The notes: a model not told the origin generated them from the sequence alone. Shown: positions 957 to 52,857, counted from the first letter of the stretch. The stretch: 64,000 bases of DNA from Kudoa neothunni (GCA_964304625.1 OZ199839.1:3586724-3650723); one strand, 5' to 3'. Made by a program: numbers and translations.

Positions 957-3900
957 TCAGTTATTGAGGCTTTTTCGTTTCCTAGTAGAACGTCGACGTG
1001 GATCGGCGTTAGTTATAGGAAAGGGAGAATTCGAGAAATTCAATTTTGAATAATCCAAGTTAACCAGATAATTTTCGGGTTCAAAATCATTATAATAAAT
1101 AAGATAGTCGGCCAAAAAGTTCACTTTGAAGACTTTATTGCTGTGAGTTGCTAGAAATTGTGCCACTTTTGGTGTCACATTGTTTTGTTGCTCGTTCTCA
1201 ATGAAAATATGAGTGACTTTTTCAGAACGGTTGGATGAAACATATCGATCAATGGGATAAAATTTTCCTCCTCCAGCTTCAGAAATCAAACGTTCAAATC
1301 CTTCTTGTTTGTTCGTTGACTCCAAATACAAAACAACATGCCAATTATAGAAAGCACCTTTACCAATCTAAAAGTACATTCAAAAATTTAGCTACTCAAT
1401 AGATAAATCTAAAAAATACATATGAGTTTGAATTTAACTTGGAATGCCAATGAGCAAATGCATCCGCAAAAATCGGATCAATGTATTCGCAATTTCGTTC
1501 GTACATAAAGAGCACATCATTCACAAAATAGCCGGCTTCTTTGGATTCCTCCAAATACGAATAATGAAGAATGGGTTTCCCGGTGGCTAGACAGCATAAC
1601 AATTTTTCATTTTTGACAATTTCATTGCCAATAATAAGATGGGTTGATTCGGCATCAAAACTACTGGTATTTAAATAAACTCCACCAAGCAACTGAATTG
1701 TTTCGCTTAGTTTTGATTTTATTTCTGACGAGAGCGAAGATATCAAAAATTTGTACATCTTTCCTTGGGTCGATTCCAAATTATTAGTGCATATGGATGG
1801 ATTATCGATAAAAGGAGGACAATCAATTGAATCATGTCCTTCATGATCGTAGGTGATAAGTATACCATCATCATCATCAACAAGATTGGTAGGAGATAAA
1901 TCCAAACAATTTTTCAACTGACTTTCCAAATTGTAGCTTTGTTCCATTTCCACTAGAATACTGCTCAAATTGGCATCCATTAAACTGATTTTATTTTCAT
2001 CATTTTTTGATGTGAGTGAAGGTCTGCTTAACTTATTAGAGGATTTTCCAAGTATATTTTTGATATCGTTTTCCAAATCTGAAATTTTACTACTTTTGGC
2101 TAAAGATTTCCTAATGGACTCTTCCAGATGATTATCCACAACAGAGGTATTAGCAACTCTGGTATTTGATATGAGAGGTTTAGTAGGACATGTGGTGGTA
2201 CTCGTATCAACGTCTGACACTTGTTCCTTTAGTAGTAGCTCTGCGTGAATAAGTTTATAATTGGCCACTTTATCACCAAAGAGATATTTTTCACTAAAGT
2301 TATCAACGTTGCTGACAACAATATGTGAGGCCGCTGTAACACTATCAGTAACAATTGCTCCGTATGATTGGCATATTTGAATCAGTTTAGTCATCAGCCG
2401 AGTATGTAGATCAGTCGAGAAATACACATAAGCATTCTTCAGTTGTTGGAGGTTGGTTTGTGGACACGATAATTTCATCAGCACTTCACTCATAATTAAA
2501 TTGTGATATTTTCCAACCGTTTGACCGAGGTTGAATGTTGATACAGTGTTTCCCGCCATTATACTTTCAAACAAGTAACTAAAAGATTTCATGGATTGAA
2601 TTCTAATTCGGCTTTGGTCATCAAACGAATGTGTTGATTGTTTTTTTGGAGTAGTGGTTGAATCCAAAAAATCCCAAATCAAAGTTCCACCATATTCACT
2701 GATAATCACAGCTAGTTGTCTAGCAACACCGCTAGGAATCGTATCGGCGATCTCAAATGTTTGGTGTTGGAACAAGACACCAACTAAGGAGGATTCAAAA
2801 ATCCACTATACAAAAACTGAGGATAATATTCATTGTCATTATCCAGTACAGTTTGGCATGGGAAAAACAATTGTTGATGATAGATTATAGATTCTAACCA
2901 AAAAACACTTTTAGAGTATTCATTGCTATTGTCAAAGATAACATCAGCGTGAAGTTCACTGAAAACTATCTCAGCTCCCATCCAAACAAGTAGATCTTTA
3001 AGTTGACCAACATTCTCAAAAAGGTAGCCGACAACAAAATTATCAGCAATGTACACCTTGGAATTGGTCAACAAAGTTGACGTAGAATCCAATTTGAAAG
3101 AGCCACCCCAATAATTCTTAGGTAGTTGAAAAGTGAACCAATGGAGAGGCACAATTTTTTGATGATTATAACACTCACTCATCCATCTTTCGGATGCAAA
3201 TTCCATAGCTATACCATTACTAACCGGAATTGAGGGTAAAGTTTGCAAAAAATTTTTAAAATTATGAATTTGATAACAACTAGTCGAATTTGTGATACAA
3301 AAATCAACGGAATTATCCTGATTGAAAAAATCTGAATACAAACTCATAACACTATCATTTTGTTCTGTAGACATCAAACAATGTACAACCGATTTGTTCA
3401 AATGAAAATAATTGCACTGAACTGCAATATCTCCTAGTAAGTTAGAGTTATCTTTATAGAGATGTTGTTCAATGGGAACAATACAATCAGAACGAATAGA
3501 AGAAAACAACCAGCTAGATTTTACAATGGCTGCCTGCCTGTTTGGTAGCTGATAGTTTTTGACAAGTTGGGACCAACTTATTCGTTTGTTCAAACTATCT
3601 CTGTTGTGTGTGACGTTTGCACACATTTCACATTGGCACGGGTTCAAATATATAAAAATATCAATATTAACACTCGACGGCCAATCAATAAGGTTGTCTT
3701 CGGCGTAGAACAACCCACCATTGGAAAGAATTTTATTTTTAATATCGATATGTTTGTAAGTGCAAAAATTGATGCAGCATATTTTCACATTGCGAAGCAG
3801 TTTACATATGTAATTCAAGTGGGTAATAGTAGCAGATTTTTTGATTTTTCCTGTAGACCTATCATTAAACACGCCTGCAACCACATTCGAAGTAACCCAA

Positions 3901-4526
3901 TGTTCGGTAATTAATGGCATTTGGTTTCGACTGGCAACAATAGCCTCATCAGTGAAACAATTTCCACAAATTACGTGGGTTACACAATTGCGATCAATAG
4001 GATCAACAAAAGGTGAATATTTCCAACCCAAAAGTGTAATGTATCTAATCAATTTATTCTTGAAATGAGCATCGAATCCACTAATTGCAATCACAAAGGC
4101 ATTATTTCTTTCGCTCGAATAACATATCGGCAATTTGATATTACTGTCAATTGTTTTATAAGGAGAGATCGGCAAACACATCTCATTCGATAGACAATGT
4201 ATAATACAACGGTAGTCATAGACATAGCATCCAAAATTGACAAATAATTGAAAATCATATTCAGTGTAATGCTCCAAAATTATGACTGTAGGGCGTTTGC
4301 TTAAATTTTCAAATCCAATCAACTTTTGATCGATATTTTGACGCTTGAAATCCACAATTGGAATATTGGAAAATATCTTTTCAATCAGCTCAACTCTTTT
4401 ATCATTTTTTATTCCAGTTTCAAATAAATGCACATTCAATCGAAAAGACGAATCCAAGCCCGAAAATTCACCCCGCTTTTTCATCCCTGATACGAACGAA
4501 TCTACGCGAGTAATTGCGACAATCAT
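957..4526 (-). CDS. TOPBP1: Multi-BRCT checkpoint/replication scaffold, TopBP1/Rad4/Cut5-like; 3 exons
   Basis: Three ORFs (2784-4526, 1396-2775, 957-1331) are joined by GT-AG introns at about 2806-2849 (44 nt) and a ~52-nt intron near 1368-1419. Repeated BRCT motifs: THVIC...EHWV; IQLLGG...THLII...KNEKLLCCLATGKPILHYSYLEES; GAFYNWHVVL; FERLISEAGGG. The start is either Met 4526 or Met 4484. Confidence 0.85.
4485..4526. promoter_or_regulatory. Putative minimal bidirectional promoter with central CGCG element
   Basis: This is the only non-coding space available between the divergent TopBP1 (if Met 4484 is the start) and DNAJC17. CGCG lies at 4505-4508. Confidence 0.5.
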
Positions 4527-5717
4527 ATGTCAAGCCGTGGTTTCGTTGATTATTATGCCGTTCTTGGCATTGAATTGACGGATGATTCATCACAGGTTCT
4601 AAAAAAATCACATTATTAAGTTTTAACCAAACTTGACTTAATGCGAAATAGATATCAAGGGCATATCGAAAAAAGGCCCTAAAATGTCATCCCGATAAAA
4701 ATCCTAACAACAAAGCTGCAGGTTTATTTAGGATTTTAGTCGTAGCAAATTTTAATTATTGATATGAACATTTAGCGGAACAATTCTTACTTCTTTCCCA
4801 AGCTTATGAAGTGTTGTCGGACGAAAAGAAAAAAGTTGGTCAAATCTACTAATTAATTTTTAAATCATTATTAGAAAGCGTTTGACACTATTGTTAAAGC
4901 AAAACTACTCCATTCGCAAAGAAACAAAGCCATGGATGACAAACGAAGAAAACTCAAAGAGCAGCTTGAACAAAACGAACAAATGGCATTCACATTTGAT
5001 AATCATGTTCAGTCGGAACGAGATGCCAAAAAAATTTACGAAAATGCTGTAATTTTGCTATTGAATTTTAGAGGAGACTTAATACAAACTTTCAATCAGA
5101 TTAAAAGACTTCGCGCTGAAAGTTCCTTGTTAATTTTGAAAGAGAAAGAAAAGCTCACCAAATCCGAAACCAGTCTACAAAAACCCACCAATACTATTAA
5201 TGTCGACAAAAGTTGGAGTATCAAAGTATTTCAGTCGCTTGACAAAACTATTGATATAGTTATTGAATTTTTAGTTGACGTGGAAATGTCAATGTAATTT
5301 TAAATTTGAAAATAGGTGTGAACTTGACGATAATCTTATGAAAAAAGCATTTTCAATATATTATCTTATTTAAAATTTATACTAATTTAGTTATGCAAAT
5401 TGGCCTCTAATATTATAGTCTCTAAAAATAAATCCATGGCAATTATCGAATTTTTAGACGAAAAAAATGCTGTATTTTATTCTGGTTTATTTATGATGGA
5501 CTTATCCACTTTAATATAGTTTGATTGTTATTCCGTGTTGAAGGAAAATGTGGAAAATATTCTACCTGATCATTCAGTTGCTGTAACAACCTTACGAGAC
5601 TTTCATTGCGGTGCGACGGCCTCGACACCGACACTCCCAACGAGCCTAAAAGGATCGTCCCTTGACGACTTGGAGGATATGATTTTATCAAAATTTACCA
5701 GCTCGAAAAATAAGTAG
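4527..5717 (+). CDS. DNAJC17: DnaJ homolog subfamily C member 17 (J domain, coiled coil, RRM-like C-terminus); multi-exon
   Basis: Spliced reading MSSRGFVDYYAVLGIELTDDSSQ|ISRAYRKKALKCHPDKNPNNKAA|EQFLLLSQAYEVLSDEKK|KAFD...MDDKRRKLKEQLE. HPD motif present, GT-AG introns, C-terminus DLEDMILSKF. Confidence 0.85.
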
Positions 5718-6289
5718 GAGAAATACTTATAGCACATTGTTGGATGATTATGAAGAGACTTTTTAGACCTTATTTATGTTTTGTAGATTTGTTAAATAAA
5801 CTGGTTCTTATTCTATTAGCGTCTCAATATTTACGATGAGTTATAATAGATAGTTTATTTTATTCTTATTTTTTTCCAAAATCCTAACGTAATTATTTTT
5901 CAAAAAAGTAGCTTTTTTTAAATTACTAAATATTTTTACTACTTATTAAATAAAATATTTTACCTTCTGCAACCAAAATCAAAAGTATTTTCATCTATAT
6001 TAATTAATGATATAGACAGTTAAAGGAAAATCAGTACATAATTATTGCAGTTTTTACACGTCTACAAAGGGATAAACTACTTTTTTAAATATTAGCTAAT
6101 TAATTTTTATTTAATATACATACATGCATATGTTTAGATATAGTACAAATTCACATAAAAACCGAATGCTTAAGTTAAGTTTTAAATTAAAAATTTATAA
6201 ATAATTAATCTAGAAATATTTGTGTTTCAAATTTCGCATTGGTATATACGCTACGTTGTATTTGTCCTAGGGTGTATGTGTGGTAGGTT

Positions 6290-25704: not shown

Positions 25705-25810
25705 TGTTATGGCTAATAGATAGCGCGGACAGGGATTAGGATTATTATTAGTACTGGTATCACTTTGGAGTTTCAAATATTATTTCTATTTGCGTTGCTC
25801 ATACTTCACA
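25705..25810 (+). repeat. 5' LTR (106 bp)
   Basis: Direct repeat of 29338-29443 with 5 substitutions. Confidence 0.95.
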
Positions 25811-25811
25811 A

Positions 25812-28800
25812 ATGGTGACAGGGGTTGAAGTTATTCCAACTTGTTTTACGATAAGACATGATAAATATGACGTGGACTCATACCGAGTGATAACATATGG
25901 CTGTTTTAGAGAATTCACTACAAAACAGCTACTGGAGCTGTTCGTAATGTCTCTTGATGATAATCTTTTAGAACTCTATGCATCTTTCCGTCCAAGTATC
26001 CGAAATGATTATTTCGAGCTAGGTCAAGCTATTGAAAAGCGCTTATTTAACAATAAGAAGACAAAATTTGTTCACTGTGGTACGATCGATATGGCACCTG
26101 GTTCATGTGATGCTGAACGAATTGTTGTTACGATCTTCGGAAAAAGCCACAATGCACTGTTAGTTACAGGAGCAACCATGTCCATTATTCGAAACGGATT
26201 AGTTCCGGACGACATTATTGTTCCAACGACATACTCTCTGATAATGGCTGATAACTCCGCGGCGAAATGTTTGGGGAAAGTAACGCCTCAGCTCAGTATT
26301 TGCAATAAAAAAGTCTCTCAAACATTCATTGTATTAAATAATGCCACGGGAGATGTTATCTTGGGAAGAGACTTTGTGAAACAAAATGAAATTGTCATTT
26401 CATTCTCGAGGAACAAAAACTCGTTAATTGAACAAGGTTGCGAAAATTATAAATCTTTTGCGATACAAACAAATATTTTCAACAATGATAATGCAAAATT
26501 CAACAATGTTAATGAACTATTGGTTTGTTTTGATTCATGTTTCGCAAAGAACTCTTACGATTTGGGTAAAATTAGCTGTACGCAACGTGCTATTTTTTGT
26601 GATGATACCCCAATTAGACAAGGTGTCAGAAGGCTCCCAGAGAGCACAAAATCATTTGTAAAGATTGAATTAAATAAAATGTTACAATCTGATATCATTC
26701 GGCCATCTACTAGTCCTTGGGCCAGTCCGTTAGTACTTACTAAAAAGAAGGATGGTAAGCTCCGTATTTGTGTGGACTATGTCAAACTGAATAGAATAAC
26801 GAAGAAAAATGCATCCCCGATACCAAATATCTCGGAAACACTTGATCAACTGTCTGGATCTTCATATTTCTCAACTCTCGACATGAAATCAGGATATTGG
26901 CAAATATGTTTAAATGAAGATGATAAGGAAAAAACGGCATTCACTACACCATATGGGCTTTATGAATTCAATTTCTTACCCTTTGGATTAACGAATGCAC
27001 CAGCAATCTTTCAACACGCAATACAGTCAATATTTAGAGAACTACTTGGTGTCGATTGCCTGGTATACCTGGATGATATAATTGTGTTCTCAAAAACAGA
27101 AAAGGAGCATCTGTTAAAACTATAACGTGTGCTTAGTAGAATTAAGTCGGCTGGTCTGAAAATGAATAAAGAAAAATGTCATTTTATGAAACGTTCAATA
27201 ACATACCTTGGATACATCATATTCCAAGATGGCATTAAAACAGATCCCGAGAAAGTTAACAAAATATTACATCATCCAAAACCGATGAATGTAAAAGAGC
27301 TGCGAACTTTTATGGGGCTGGCGAACTATTACCGAAACTATATAAACGGTTTTGCCAAATTAACAGTTCCCCTTACAAAGCTCACCCACAAAAATACAAA
27401 TTTCCAGTGGAATGAAAACTGTGAAAATTCCTTCAACACATTAAAGAATTTACTAAGTTCACCACCAATTTTGGCGTTGCCAAACTTTGATGAACCATTT
27501 GAATTGGCAACCGATGCCTCGGATAATGCCATTGGGGCTGTTCTTAGTCAGAAGATAAACGGAAGGGAGCGTGCTATATGCTATGGAAGTAGACAGCTAA
27601 ATCAAGCTGAACGTAATTACTCGGTCATTGAAAAGGAGTGTTTAGCGATTGTCTGGGCGACAAAACTATACAGACACTACCTATATGGAAAAAAATTTAA
27701 GATATGGACCGACCATAACCCGTTGACATTCATTAATTCAATGAAAGATACTCATGGTAGAATTGCACGTTGGAAACTTACATTGCAACAATATGAATTT
27801 GATATAATCTACCGTCCAAATTCCAAAAATATGAACGCTGATGTCATGTCTAGAATTCCGGCTGAAGAACTAGAGAGAAACATTTCATGTGTCTGCAATA
27901 TTGGTATAGAAAATATTGACAAAGATGAATTTAAAAAACTTTACAAAGCCGACAAGAGACGGGGACCACTCGAAAAACAACTTAACTTATTCAAAACAAT
28001 TCAAACGAGCAGAGGTATATATACAATGAAAAGCGGCATTATCAACAGAATATGCAAGACTCCCGTTGGTCCAGTTGAACAATTGTACGTCCCTATCATA
28101 TTAAAGGATCAGATAATGGAAAAAGTACACGATGAAAGTGGTCATTCTGGTTATTTTAAAACGTTTGATTCAATCAGGCGTAGGTTTTATTGGCCCGGAT
28201 GCCAAAATGAAATTTGCGAATTTGTCAAACGATGTAAACTATGCGAGATGTTTCGCTCGACGTATCCCAAACCTTCACTTGTGCATTTTGAATCGTCTAA
28301 ACCGTTTGATACTCTCCAGTGGGACATGATTGGTCCATTAAAAGAAACTAGAAATGGAAATCGGTACATTCTTGTAGTATATAAGATGTCTTCACTAAAT
28401 GGGCCGAAGCCTTCCCACTAAATTCAACCAGTAGTGCTACGATATCCAAAATCCTCGTGGATGAAATAATTTGCCGATATGGAATACCTAACCAAATACA
28501 TTCGGATAATGGGACAAACCTTGTTTCTGAGATAATAAAGAAAATATGAAAAACTTTTAAAATCTATCGAACCAACACAACACCATATCACCCTCAGGGG
28601 AACGGTGGAATGGAGAGGTTGAATGGGACGTTAAAGAAAATGCTGATAAAAGCAAGCTACGAAAATGATGCCTGGGACATAATGTTGCCCAAGGTATTAT
28701 TCTATTATAGGTGTGCAACGCACACATCCACTGGCTATTCACCCTACAAATTGATGACTGGGCGGTCTCCCAGAACCCATTTGGACACAATTGTGGATAA

Positions 28801-37814: not shown

Positions 37815-40362
37815 GGTAATGGGGGAGCAGTCAGCTCATAAAATTAACCATGTTGCGCATGTTTAAAATTCCCGATCTTTCATATATCAACATATTACGT
37901 TTTTTAAATATTGGGTGTTCAAAAATTTTTTAAAAATTCACACTTCAACATTTTCTTCCAAAATCCAGCTTCGGGTGTCTTCGTCGCTCGCGCCTTTTAT
38001 TTTAACTTTTTGCCATAGAGCTGTTTCCGCATAAAAAAGCTTCAAACTTATAGAATAGAGCATTCAATAGTTTTTATGTTTGATTTAATGTCGCGTGTGC
38101 GTTTATTCTCATTATTATTACGTAAGTTCCTTTAATCTGTAATAAAGTTGTGTTGGGTGGTAAATTATATTCTATCCATAAATGATATCCTCTAGTACAG
38201 ATCAAAATACGTAATTATAAAAAGCGTGCATACTTAAATAAGAATTTGGTCATGCCTTCGTTAATAATCTTATTGAAACGGGTTTCTCGAAGGCGTCATC
38301 ATGGCAGATATTAAGTATCAGCGTCAATTTTATCAAATTTTATTAAATAATGAAGCATTGATTTATTTTTTGATAGAAAAAGGTTTGTTCAAAAGGCCTC
38401 CAAATAGATGCAGAAATTGTCATAAGTTTAATACTTATATGTTAAAAATAACAACAACCACAAATAATTCTTTGAGTGAACTTGATCACTTCTCCTATAT
38501 ATGCTCCAAGTACTTATTTCCAAAAAAACTTCATATTTATTATTTGGGAGAGATTGTAGAACTCATTATTCTCCCAGAACCTCAACATTTTTCGCATCTT
38601 CAAATTCCAATGGGCATAACTACTCGAAATTATCTGTTTCACAGATATTTGAACTTATATATTTATGGAGTGTTGAAGAACAGAGAAGTCGAGTAATCGC
38701 GCTCACAAATTTATCAGGAAAAACTGTCACATCATAGTTTTCCACATTCAGGAAGATTTGCGAGTTAAGTTTTTGCCGCCGAGAAAAATATCGAGGTCTA
38801 AATACAATAATTGAAATCGACGAATGTCTTCTCCGCGGTAAACGAAAAAATAATAGAGGAAGGTATTTGGAAATGGACCGGTGGAGAAGTGAGGAGAATG
38901 AAATTTACGTCCCAAGTGGATCGGAAAATGAGGACCTGGCAACCTCTTCTAGTTCAGAGCGATATGGGGATCGCATAATTGGTCCATGGGTCGTTGGAAT
39001 ATGCGAATGTTCCGTTAACAACGAAGGCAAACGTACGCTTCTTGAATGCAGATTTTTCATCGTCGAAAGGAGGGACAAGCGTACTCTTATACCGCTTATA
39101 CTGCAAGAGGTTGAGCATGGTGCAAAAATATTTACCGATGAATGGAAAGCTTATCGCACTCTTGGTATCTACGGTTACGACCACGTAACGATTAATCACT
39201 CCCGTGAATATGTAACCAGTCAAGGCCACCATACAAATACGGTCGAGGTAATATGGCATCATCTGAAAACGAAAATATTAAGACGTATGAGTGGGGTTCT
39301 GAGGCACTTATTAAATTCTTATCTGCAAGAAGAATGGCTTCGCTCAAAATACAATGACTGCTGGTCTTTTTTCGATTACATAGTGAGCGAAATATCTAAC
39401 ATATATTGAAATAATTTTTATCGTGATTTTTTCCTTTGTGCGCGAATATTTATTTTTTGCATAAAATAGCACCTTTAAACTTTTTTTAGTATTATTGATT
39501 TTAATATATGTTAAACCATCAATAAATAATTATAAGATTTGTTTTAACCATAGAATTATTTGTAAGAAAAAAAGATGGGGGATGAAACCAACGCTTAATT
39601 AAATCATGCTATATTATTTTCTGCCTCAAATTTTGATTCATTTGGGTATATTATATGTAAAAGTTTTTATAACTATTTAAAAACATTCCGAATTTTTCTT
39701 GACATAATAATAATTGGACAATAAGTGTATTTGACACAAATTGTGTTGTTTTTAAGTAAAACATAATAATAAAATTATTAAATACACTTTTTAAAATAAA
39801 TAAATTTATTAAGTATACGTAATATTTTCATTTATATACACATAATAACTCTATTACATTTACATCATCGTAGAATTTAATATATATCATTGCGATATTT
39901 CATACTTATCATCTATCTAATACGCTGGAAAAAATATAAAAACTAAATCTAAATAGGTGAAAAAGTTTTATGCGCAATTGGTCTCTATCGATCAAAATTT
40001 TAACCTAGAAAGCCAGACGCACATACACAATAAATATAATCTCATAAGTAAATATAATTATTCACACTCGTATTATTATTTTTTTGCGCCTAAACGTAAA
40101 ATCTAGAGGAAATCGAGGCAGCGGTTATTAATATCTTTTAAGTTATTAGAAAATACAAAATAATTTTTCGTGCGCATTGCAATGCGCGAGCGACGAAGAC
40201 ACCCGAAGCTGGATTTTGGAAGAAAATGTTGAAGTGTGAATTTTTAAAAAATTTTTGAACACCCAATATTTAAAAAACGTATTATGTTGATATATGAAAG
40301 ATCGGGAATTTTAAACATGCGCAACATGGTTAATTTTGTGAGCTGACTGCTCCCCCATTACC
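37815..40362 (+). mobile_element. Merlin DNA transposon with 179-bp TIRs
   Basis: TIRs 37815-37993 and 40184-40362 differ at 2 positions. 8-bp TSD TAATATTT/TGATATTT. Internal IS1595-type transposase. Confidence 0.93.
38301..39409 (+). pseudogene. Merlin/ISXO2-like transposase with a probable intron, one premature stop and a frameshift
   Basis: CRNC...C..DC Zn ribbon, IEIDEC..RGKRK.NRGR, WVVG, IFTDEWKAY, INHS, HTNTVEVIW. TAG at 38735-38737 where Trp is typical. Confidence 0.85.
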
Positions 40363-51585: not shown

Positions 51586-52857
51586 ATGGCTGAGGAGATT
51601 GATTTCAGCGATCTTCCAACCAATGACACTAGGGTTATTGTATTAGCCGGGGCGCTAGCTGGTATTTTAGAGCACTCGGTGATGTATCCCATCGATTCGG
51701 TAAAGGTAATGTCTAAAATCAGCCTCGTTTTCTGATGACTTGATTATCTAATAAAACAAATCATTAAAGTTGGCTATGTATGTAGACTCGCGTCCAACTT
51801 TTTAAAAATACGGACCCAAAAATGTCAATAAGATATGCTTTGAAGAATATGATTAAAAATGAAGGATTCCTTTCTCCTTATCGAGGAATCGGGGCTGTCC
51901 TACTTGGGACTGGTCCGATTCATTCGTTGTATTTTGGAAGTTATGAGTTATCGAAAAATACACTTCCGAAACTGTCACCTAAATTGCGGGACACCAAATT
52001 GTTATATGGTATATAGATTGGCATGGTAACATGTTCGATCTAAATAATAAACATCGTTTTATAGCTTATTCTGGAATTGTTGCTACACTTATACATGATT
52101 TCCTGTTGAATCCTATTGAAGGTATTGCCGCTGTTGTTGTTGTGATCTTTTGATGATGATATCTTACATTTTTTGTCTAGTGGTCAAGCAACGCCTTCAA
52201 ATGGACAACCAAAGATACAAGGGTATAGCTCATTGTGTGAAGTGTGTTTCGAAAACTGAAGGGCTGTCTGCATTCTATCGAAGTTACTCCACTCAACTTT
52301 TAATGAATGTACCATACAACTCGGTGAACTTTGTCACTTATGAAACTGTGAGAAAATTCCTGTATAAAACAACCTATAATCCCGGGGAGAATTCCAACAA
52401 TACTCATCGTCCATTTGACCCTAAAGTGCACTTGATCGCAGGAAGTTGTTCGGGAAGTTTAGCTGCTGCTATCACTGTCCCATTTGATGTGATAAAAACT
52501 CAACTGAATACTCAAAGAATAAGCGGCGACTCGGGTGTGATAAATCGTTGTCATTGTACATCCTCATTTTCTAGCGGGAACCTCACAAGTTCAATCCCTG
52601 CTTCATCCAAATACGCCGCTGATTGTAGCACCTCCTCACTTGGCTCTTCTTTGATGGTGGCCTCAAAAACACGCCACCTTACTTCCACCGAACAGGTGCC
52701 ACTCAGAGGAATGAGTGATGCTGTACTATATATCTTCAAAAATGGAGGCGTGAAAGGTTTCTTCCGTGGAACTGTGGCCAGAGTTATCTACAATACACCG
52801 GCATGTGCTATTTGCTGGTCGGTGTATGAATTTTTTAAGCATTTCCTCCACACATAA
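51586..52857 (+). CDS. Mitoferrin (SLC25A28/37-type mitochondrial iron carrier); 4 exons
   Basis: [20 protein letters not shown]|[23 protein letters not shown]|[41 protein letters not shown]. Confidence 0.92.

Follow-up and report, generated by a model that had tools for sequence, protein, structure and literature searches.

A 42-bp Spacer with a CGCG-Core Motif as a Putative Two-Way Promoter of Divergent TopBP1-Like and J-Domain Genes in Kudoa neothunni

How are two divergent genes started when their first possible start codons stand back to back? This question is raised by a locus of the myxozoan Kudoa neothunni, which lies in a stretch of 64,000 nucleotides of contig 2 (GCA_964304625.1, OZ199839.1:3586724-3650723); the whole stretch is called the window below, and positions are counted from its first letter. 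The CAT at 4524-4526, the first in-frame methionine (Met1) of a minus-strand TopBP1-like ORF of 580 codons (2784..4526), directly adjoins the ATG at 4527-4529 of a plus-strand J-domain gene, and the local reading is gcgacaatCAT/ATGtcaagc. The second methionine of the TopBP1-like ORF (Met15) is the CAT at 4482-4484 on the minus strand. With Met1 in use, 0 bp separate the two divergent ATGs; with Met15, the distance is 42 bp, and the spacer is 4485-4526. By these ATG distances, the two genes fall under the definition of a bidirectional (head-to-head) pair, which asks for opposite strands and less than 1 kb from one 5' end to the other. A preliminary description of the window had claimed both the abutment and the 42 bp left by a start at the second methionine, and the sequence together with the ORF reading bore out both. 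The elements of this layout are as follows:

4482..4484, minus strand: Met15 of the TopBP1-like gene; G at -3; 20 nt past the shared motif, as in the sibling pairs described below
4485..4526, no strand assigned: spacer, proposed shared bidirectional promoter; 42 bp, GC 45% vs ~30% in the genome
4503..4511, no strand assigned: CGCG-core motif TACGCGAGT at the spacer centre; 20 nt from the Met15 codon, 16 nt from the J-domain gene ATG
4524..4526, minus strand: Met1 of the TopBP1-like gene; C at -3; read on its strand, it precedes the shared motif, which sets it apart from the starts in the sibling pairs
4527..4529, plus strand: start codon of the J-domain (DNAJC17-like) gene; the only ATG after the in-frame TGA at 4488-4490

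The range of possible starts is narrow. The TopBP1-like ORF cannot be longer upstream, because an in-frame TGA stands 2 codons ahead of Met1 on its strand. On the plus strand, there is an in-frame TGA at 4488-4490 and no ATG within 4431-4526; therefore, translation can begin ahead of the J domain only at the ATG at 4527. DNA sequencing of the source sample gave low-coverage contigs, and one of them matched 4384-4560 with zero differences, which indicates that the CAT/ATG junction is not an assembly join.

The K. neothunni assembly has 40,260,978 bases in 4 contigs, with 12,040,071 bases in contig 2 and a GC content of ~30%. It was obtained from yellowfin-tuna reads at a coverage of ~7x and was described as 40.2 Mb with an N50 of 12.0 Mb, comprising 3 chromosomes and the mitochondrial genome, with a GC content of 30.41%, introns of 26% GC and a median intron length of 49 bp (PMC12239612). 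Gene predictions were based on protein hints only, and very few transcriptomic reads of the host mapped to the parasite (PMC12239612). The 3 RNA runs under the same species label, which are most likely from the host fish, gave 0 reads on window positions 1000-6000. The median intergenic distance of the species is 3,578 bp (PMC12239612), so a spacing of 42 bp is a special arrangement and does not reflect general compaction. An unselective scan for outward ORFs around CAT...ATG was useless without annotation, with 76 candidates in the window alone.

Judged by its domains and relatives, the minus-strand gene is TopBP1-like and very divergent. BRCT domain matches were found in both large ORFs, and PF23294, the TopBP1/SLF1-type BRCT, matched the last exon (960-1367, E 2e-9). 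An HMMER search with the first 330 residues found only 4 relatives, the best of which (P0001) had 38% identity, and a planthopper protein named DNA topoisomerase 2-binding protein 1 was among them. Through the BRCT matches, PF23294 and this named relative, the gene fits the plan of TopBP1/Dpb11/Cut5 proteins (N-terminal BRCT0-1-2, further BRCTs and a C-terminal TopBP1/SLF1-type BRCT), and the earlier naming of this gene as TopBP1 holds in the form TopBP1-like.

957..4526, minus strand: TopBP1-like gene; BRCT matches, PF23294, colinear with P0001; exon borders set by hand
Parts of the TopBP1-like gene, minus strand: first coding block to ~2797; other frame to 1420; intron 1368-1419; last exon 960-1367; stop 957-959
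2797..2801, minus strand: reading-frame break in a T5 run; the ORF1 frame fits P0001 to residue 515 and the ORF2 frame from residue 534

P0001 has no intron at the position of the frame break and is colinear across it, so the break is not an intron. A 44-nt intron at 2806-2849 had been considered as a bridge over the break and was rejected because P0001 is colinear through that stretch. The likeliest cause is a homopolymer miscount at ~7x coverage, the alternative being a real frameshift. At the other end of the protein, the conserved N-terminal block FRLNVHLF begins 13 residues after Met15 and 27 residues after Met1, and P0001 has 38 residues ahead of this block. With only 4 relatives and a best identity of 38%, the choice between Met1 and Met15 is not decided by conservation. 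The contig that encodes P0001 (L002, a very AT-rich Logan contig from SRR31175926) has no J-domain gene in the 281 nt upstream of TopBP1, which argues that the pairing of TopBP1 with the J-domain gene is not ancient. In the same 281 nt (L002 1-281), GCGCAC occurs twice (~103 and ~233), the second time ~45 nt before the TopBP1 ATG, and it may be a related promoter motif.

The plus-strand gene begins with MSSRGFVDYYAVLGIELTDDSSQ, which is followed by a 56-nt intron. Its exon 2 (ISRAYRKKALKCHPDKNPNNKAA) matched positions 17-38 of the Pfam DnaJ profile (E 1.4e-7) and includes HPD, so the J domain begins ~7 residues past the methionine, as had been described.

4527..5717, plus strand: J-domain gene; hand exon model 4527-4595, 4652-4721, 4776-4834, 4875-5225, 5275-5346, 5391-5471, 5520-5717

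The introns of this model are 40-57 nt long and GT..AG, except for intron 5347-5390 (plus strand, 44 nt), where, by eye only, a GC donor (GC..AG) is required to keep the RRM-like exons in frame. An N-terminal J domain with the HPD motif, as in DNAJC17, is present. Exons 5-7 looked RRM-like by eye, and Pfam, PDB and Atlas searches of these single short exons gave no match, domain searches of the gene models having been run exon by exon. The preliminary description had called this gene DNAJC17. The J domain of that assignment stands, and the specific name, which means a J domain plus a C-terminal RRM, fits by eye.

Is the layout particular to this locus? Three more tight head-to-head pairs (L003, L004 and L005), all on contig 2 and with genes checked by domain matches, were examined, and each has its own copy of the motif. 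The gap between start codons, the two genes and the motif copy of each pair are as follows:

L003/L038, 29 bp: minus strand, V-ATPase proteolipid c subunit, ATP6V0C (ATP-synt_C, E 6e-15); plus strand, TBCB-like gene (CAP_GLY, E 8e-10); motif TGCGCGAGT on the reverse strand
L004/L041, 30 bp: minus strand, CHCH protein (weak match); plus strand, ferrochelatase (E 9e-11 and 2e-9); motif TGCGCGAGT
L005/L039, 29 bp: minus strand, unnamed gene; plus strand, DEAD-box helicase (E 3e-7); motif TGCGCGAGC
The pair of this study, 42 bp: motif TACGCGAGT

A central [A/G]CGCGAG[C/T] was found in 4/4 tight-pair spacers. In 254,647 bp of other sequence of the same genome, CGCGAG/CTCGCG occurred 16 times in either orientation (6.3e-5 per bp), which corresponds to a chance of ~0.002 per spacer. 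The L004 spacer was looked at only after the motif had been defined and was thus an independent test, and the motif was present. The GC content of the four spacers was 40-48%, well above the non-coding level. Given the 3,578-bp median intergenic distance and a rare motif common to three equally tight pairs, the spacing of the pair studied here is more than chance, and the pair is one ordinary member of the tight-pair class.

The motif is also found 7-20 nt before the ATG of single genes, in either orientation, among them the genes for lipin, a WD40 protein and a weakly EF-Ts-like protein. For lipin, the N-terminus was verified (Lipin_N profile positions 1-89 from residue 1, E 5e-32). Because the motif stands before the ATGs of single genes in either orientation, the CGCG-core element appears to be a general, orientation-independent feature near start codons, and tight pairs would arise where two genes share one copy. 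Genome-wide, CAT-N(6-24)-CGCGAG-N(6-24)-ATG was not enriched (294 vs 284 in the reversed control). The stricter TRCGCGAGY version was mildly enriched (50 vs 29 in the control), partly via a repeat family. Among ~25-30 loci selected by the motif, the only true tight divergent pairs were the four already known. The idea that most CAT...CGCGAG...ATG matches are tight gene pairs was dropped on the basis of the 294 vs 284 count and the inspection of loci, and the class of tight pairs is small when judged by the motif.

Some copies of the motif lie in other settings. A dispersed repeat family carries CATATACGGGTGCGCGAGTATTTAGAATG, in which the same promoter-like motif stands between CAT and ATG, with copies at these positions:

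C1:12963959
C1:13646210
C3:2027721
C3:3484044
C3:4504449
C3:4625465

On C1:10641366-10644413 (L030), within 1546-2970, TACGCGAGT lies 18 nt before the ATG of a gene that looks, by eye, like a pogo/Tigger-type transposase. In the window itself, within 51787-51830 (plus strand), a CTCGCG lies 34 nt upstream of an ATG that possibly opens a mitochondrial-carrier gene, whose large exon is at 52150-52857. The window also holds an ORF for an IS1595/ISXO2-like DDE transposase (38867-39409) between inverted copies of one sequence (37987-40190), and each of these inverted copies holds CGCGAG (37987 and 40185). A Ty3/gypsy-type pol with protease, reverse transcriptase, RNase H and an integrase zinc domain was read at 25812-28421 (plus strand), as two ORFs split by a stop at ~27126-27128, and short sequences at 25724 and 29357, nearly identical to each other, resemble LTRs of this element.

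We lean towards the view that the divergent pair is served by one very small shared two-way promoter around the CGCG core, with a Met15 start and short leaders. A sequence-specific factor would bind TACGCGAGT (4503-4511) in the middle of the 42-bp spacer, and Pol II would initiate on either side of the element, or inside it. The TopBP1-like mRNA would start downstream of the element on the minus strand, within 4485-4504, and be translated from Met15 (4484), while the J-domain mRNA would start within ~16-20 nt of the ATG at 4527, inside 4511-4526. The abutment of CAT and ATG would then be a coincidence, with Met1 as an in-frame upstream ATG outside the TopBP1-like mRNA. In this study, we regard Met15 as the likely start codon of the TopBP1-like gene, and with some confidence. 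A start at Met1 would put the motif inside the TopBP1 coding sequence, unlike in all the sibling pairs, so the literal 0-bp reading is probably not functional. The peptide stretch MIVAITRVDSFVSG would be made only if translation begins upstream of Met15. The preliminary description had also set the footprint of two pre-initiation complexes against the 42 bp. Room for both between the ATGs is no real constraint, since coding DNA can hold such complexes and the two need not be present simultaneously.

The length of the leaders can be approached through upstream ATGs. Lipin, ferrochelatase, ATP6V0C, the L036 gene and the left gene of L005 all have out-of-frame ATGs at or next to the motif, 11-22 nt ahead of their start codons. 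If transcribed, these ATGs would make overlapping upstream ORFs that hamper translation, which points to transcription starting at or just after the motif and to leaders that are probably ~20 nt or less; the argument covers ~12 genes, and leaky scanning could tolerate such ATGs. Leaders shorter than ~20 nt are unusual in animals. The preliminary description had offered three ways out of the crowded layout, namely transcripts that overlap at their 5' ends, leaders of about 20 nt or less and leaders added by trans-splicing. Short leaders with a Met15 start are the best supported of the three, and the support from the sibling layout and the upstream ATGs is indirect.

Overlapping divergent transcripts would start beyond the motif or in the first exon of the partner, share tens of bases at their 5' ends, carry the motif in both leaders and perhaps let TopBP1 be translated from Met1. 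We consider this arrangement unlikely, and several observations speak for it: Met1 shares the frame of Met15 and no stop comes between them, the plus strand has no ATG for 96 nt above the J-domain gene ATG, so that a longer leader would be free of upstream ATGs, the TopBP1 N-terminus of P0001 is longer, and human transcription starts lie up to ~50 nt from CGCG elements (PMC6192621). However, leaders of this kind would bring the out-of-frame ATGs beside the motif into the mRNAs of ferrochelatase, ATP6V0C and the left gene of L005, a TopBP1 mRNA beginning more than ~43 nt above Met1 would gain two upstream ATGs, and the context of Met1 is poor, with C at -3. Leaders could also come from splicing, either as a trans-spliced leader or through a 5'-UTR intron just upstream of the ATGs, with the promoters far off. 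At 2 nt before the Met15 codon there is an acceptor-like CAG (ttcgtatcag/gg) with a run partly rich in pyrimidines, and spliced-leader trans-splicing occurs in hydrozoan cnidarians. Nevertheless, the interval from the motif to the ATG of the J-domain gene lacks an AG, as does the same interval in the WD40 gene and in the left gene of L004, and a promoter explains the conserved central motif more simply. The Rfam SL1 model RF00198, run on the whole genome, gave no match among 50 scored of 13,035 candidates, with the controls silent as well, Rfam and tRNA scans of the window found nothing, and a search of one paper library found nothing that links Myxozoa with spliced leaders. We hold a splicing origin to be very improbable, and trans-spliced leaders were left without support, given the lack of an SL1 match, the absence of AG from motif to ATG in several sibling genes and the lack of a pyrimidine tract.

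A shared promoter would be unneeded if one of the genes were inactive, for example if the TopBP1-like gene were a decaying copy, or if the gene models were wrong. The TopBP1-like frame does break at the T5 run (2797-2801), and the gene predictions of the species rest on protein hints only (PMC12239612). Yet the gene is otherwise open over ~1,150 codons, in three blocks, and keeps its BRCT and PF23294 domains intact, a single homopolymer break in a ~7x assembly fits a miscount, and the layout recurs in three sibling pairs whose genes are housekeeping genes beyond doubt. We regard an inactive gene or a wrong model as extremely unlikely. TopBP1 is an essential replication factor. Returning to the shared promoter, we think it somewhat probable, from the motif and its sibling copies, that the 42 bp of the locus are a shared promoter, one of a type found repeatedly in this genome.

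Known promoter systems offer partial parallels. The vertebrate CGCG element TCTCGCGAGA (BANP motif) occurs in TATA-less bidirectional promoters and is enriched in housekeeping promoters (PMC6192621). In reporter assays, a single CGCG element in either orientation sufficed for two-way transcription, and the starts of human POLR1C/YIPF3 flank one CGCG copy, 30 nt apart (PMC6192621). The Kudoa motif is similar in having a CpG-rich core with CGCGAG, in lying between divergent housekeeping genes and in occurring in both orientations. However, only CGCGAG is common to the two, and the Kudoa flanks are T[A/G] and [T/C] instead of the palindromic TCT...AGA. The 10-bp palindrome TCTCGCGAGA was not found, the copy in the pair of this study being TCTACGCGAGTA and those of the siblings TGCGCGAGT or TGCGCGAGC. 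In addition, the 29-42 bp of Kudoa separate start codons rather than transcription starts, so the Kudoa leaders would be far shorter or overlapping. A six-frame genome search for the BEN domain of BANP (PF10523) gave no match, with the controls silent too and the exons short.

NRF1 (Ewg/P3A2) sites, GCGCATGCGC, are typical of animal housekeeping and bidirectional promoters. They share a GCGC/CGCG-rich core with the Kudoa motif, and several sibling motifs (ATGCGCGAG) contain an NRF1 half-site. The copy of the pair studied here (TACGCGAGTAATTGCG) differs from an NRF1 site in lacking the palindrome, and the invariant part across the pairs is CGCGAG. The NRF1 palindrome YGCGCAYGCGCR is absent from 4485-4526, and some sibling spacers have the half-site only. 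An NRF1-type DNA-binding domain (PF10491) is encoded on contig 2 at 4313831-4314551 (minus strand) in two exons, with E values of 4e-53 and 5e-22, respectively. This domain is well conserved in a much-reduced genome. We propose NRF1 as a candidate reader of the GCGC/CGCG-core motifs. We class the Kudoa element as one that would resemble CGCG and NRF1 elements in its working, and as a member of neither family.

Very short leaders are known from Giardia, Entamoeba, Trichomonas, microsporidia and mammalian TISU mRNAs. As in these systems, the Kudoa start codons lie within ~20 nt or less of the putative promoter element. In contrast, those systems are gene-dense or depend on the context of the start codon, whereas Kudoa is an animal with median spacers of 3.6 kb, and none of the ten Kudoa start codons inspected has a TISU-like context.

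Two-way promoters built on CpG-rich elements are familiar from animals. To our knowledge, this does not hold for a whole promoter together with two leaders within 29-42 bp, least of all where the genes otherwise stand 3.6 kb from each other. For annotation, the motif may serve as a rule for choosing start codons in an RNA-poor genome (Met15 over Met1), and it may help to find small first exons. We tentatively suggest, from the four spacers, that a set of Kudoa housekeeping genes might have the smallest two-way Pol II promoters known in an animal, made of a 9-bp CGCG-core element, gaps of 29-42 bp and leaders of ~5-20 nt. If the short leaders are true, Kudoa would provide a natural minimal Pol II promoter, and how ribosomes recognise start codons so near the cap would become a question. 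Kudoa would then be an animal that routinely translates near-leaderless mRNAs without the pressure of genome compactness.
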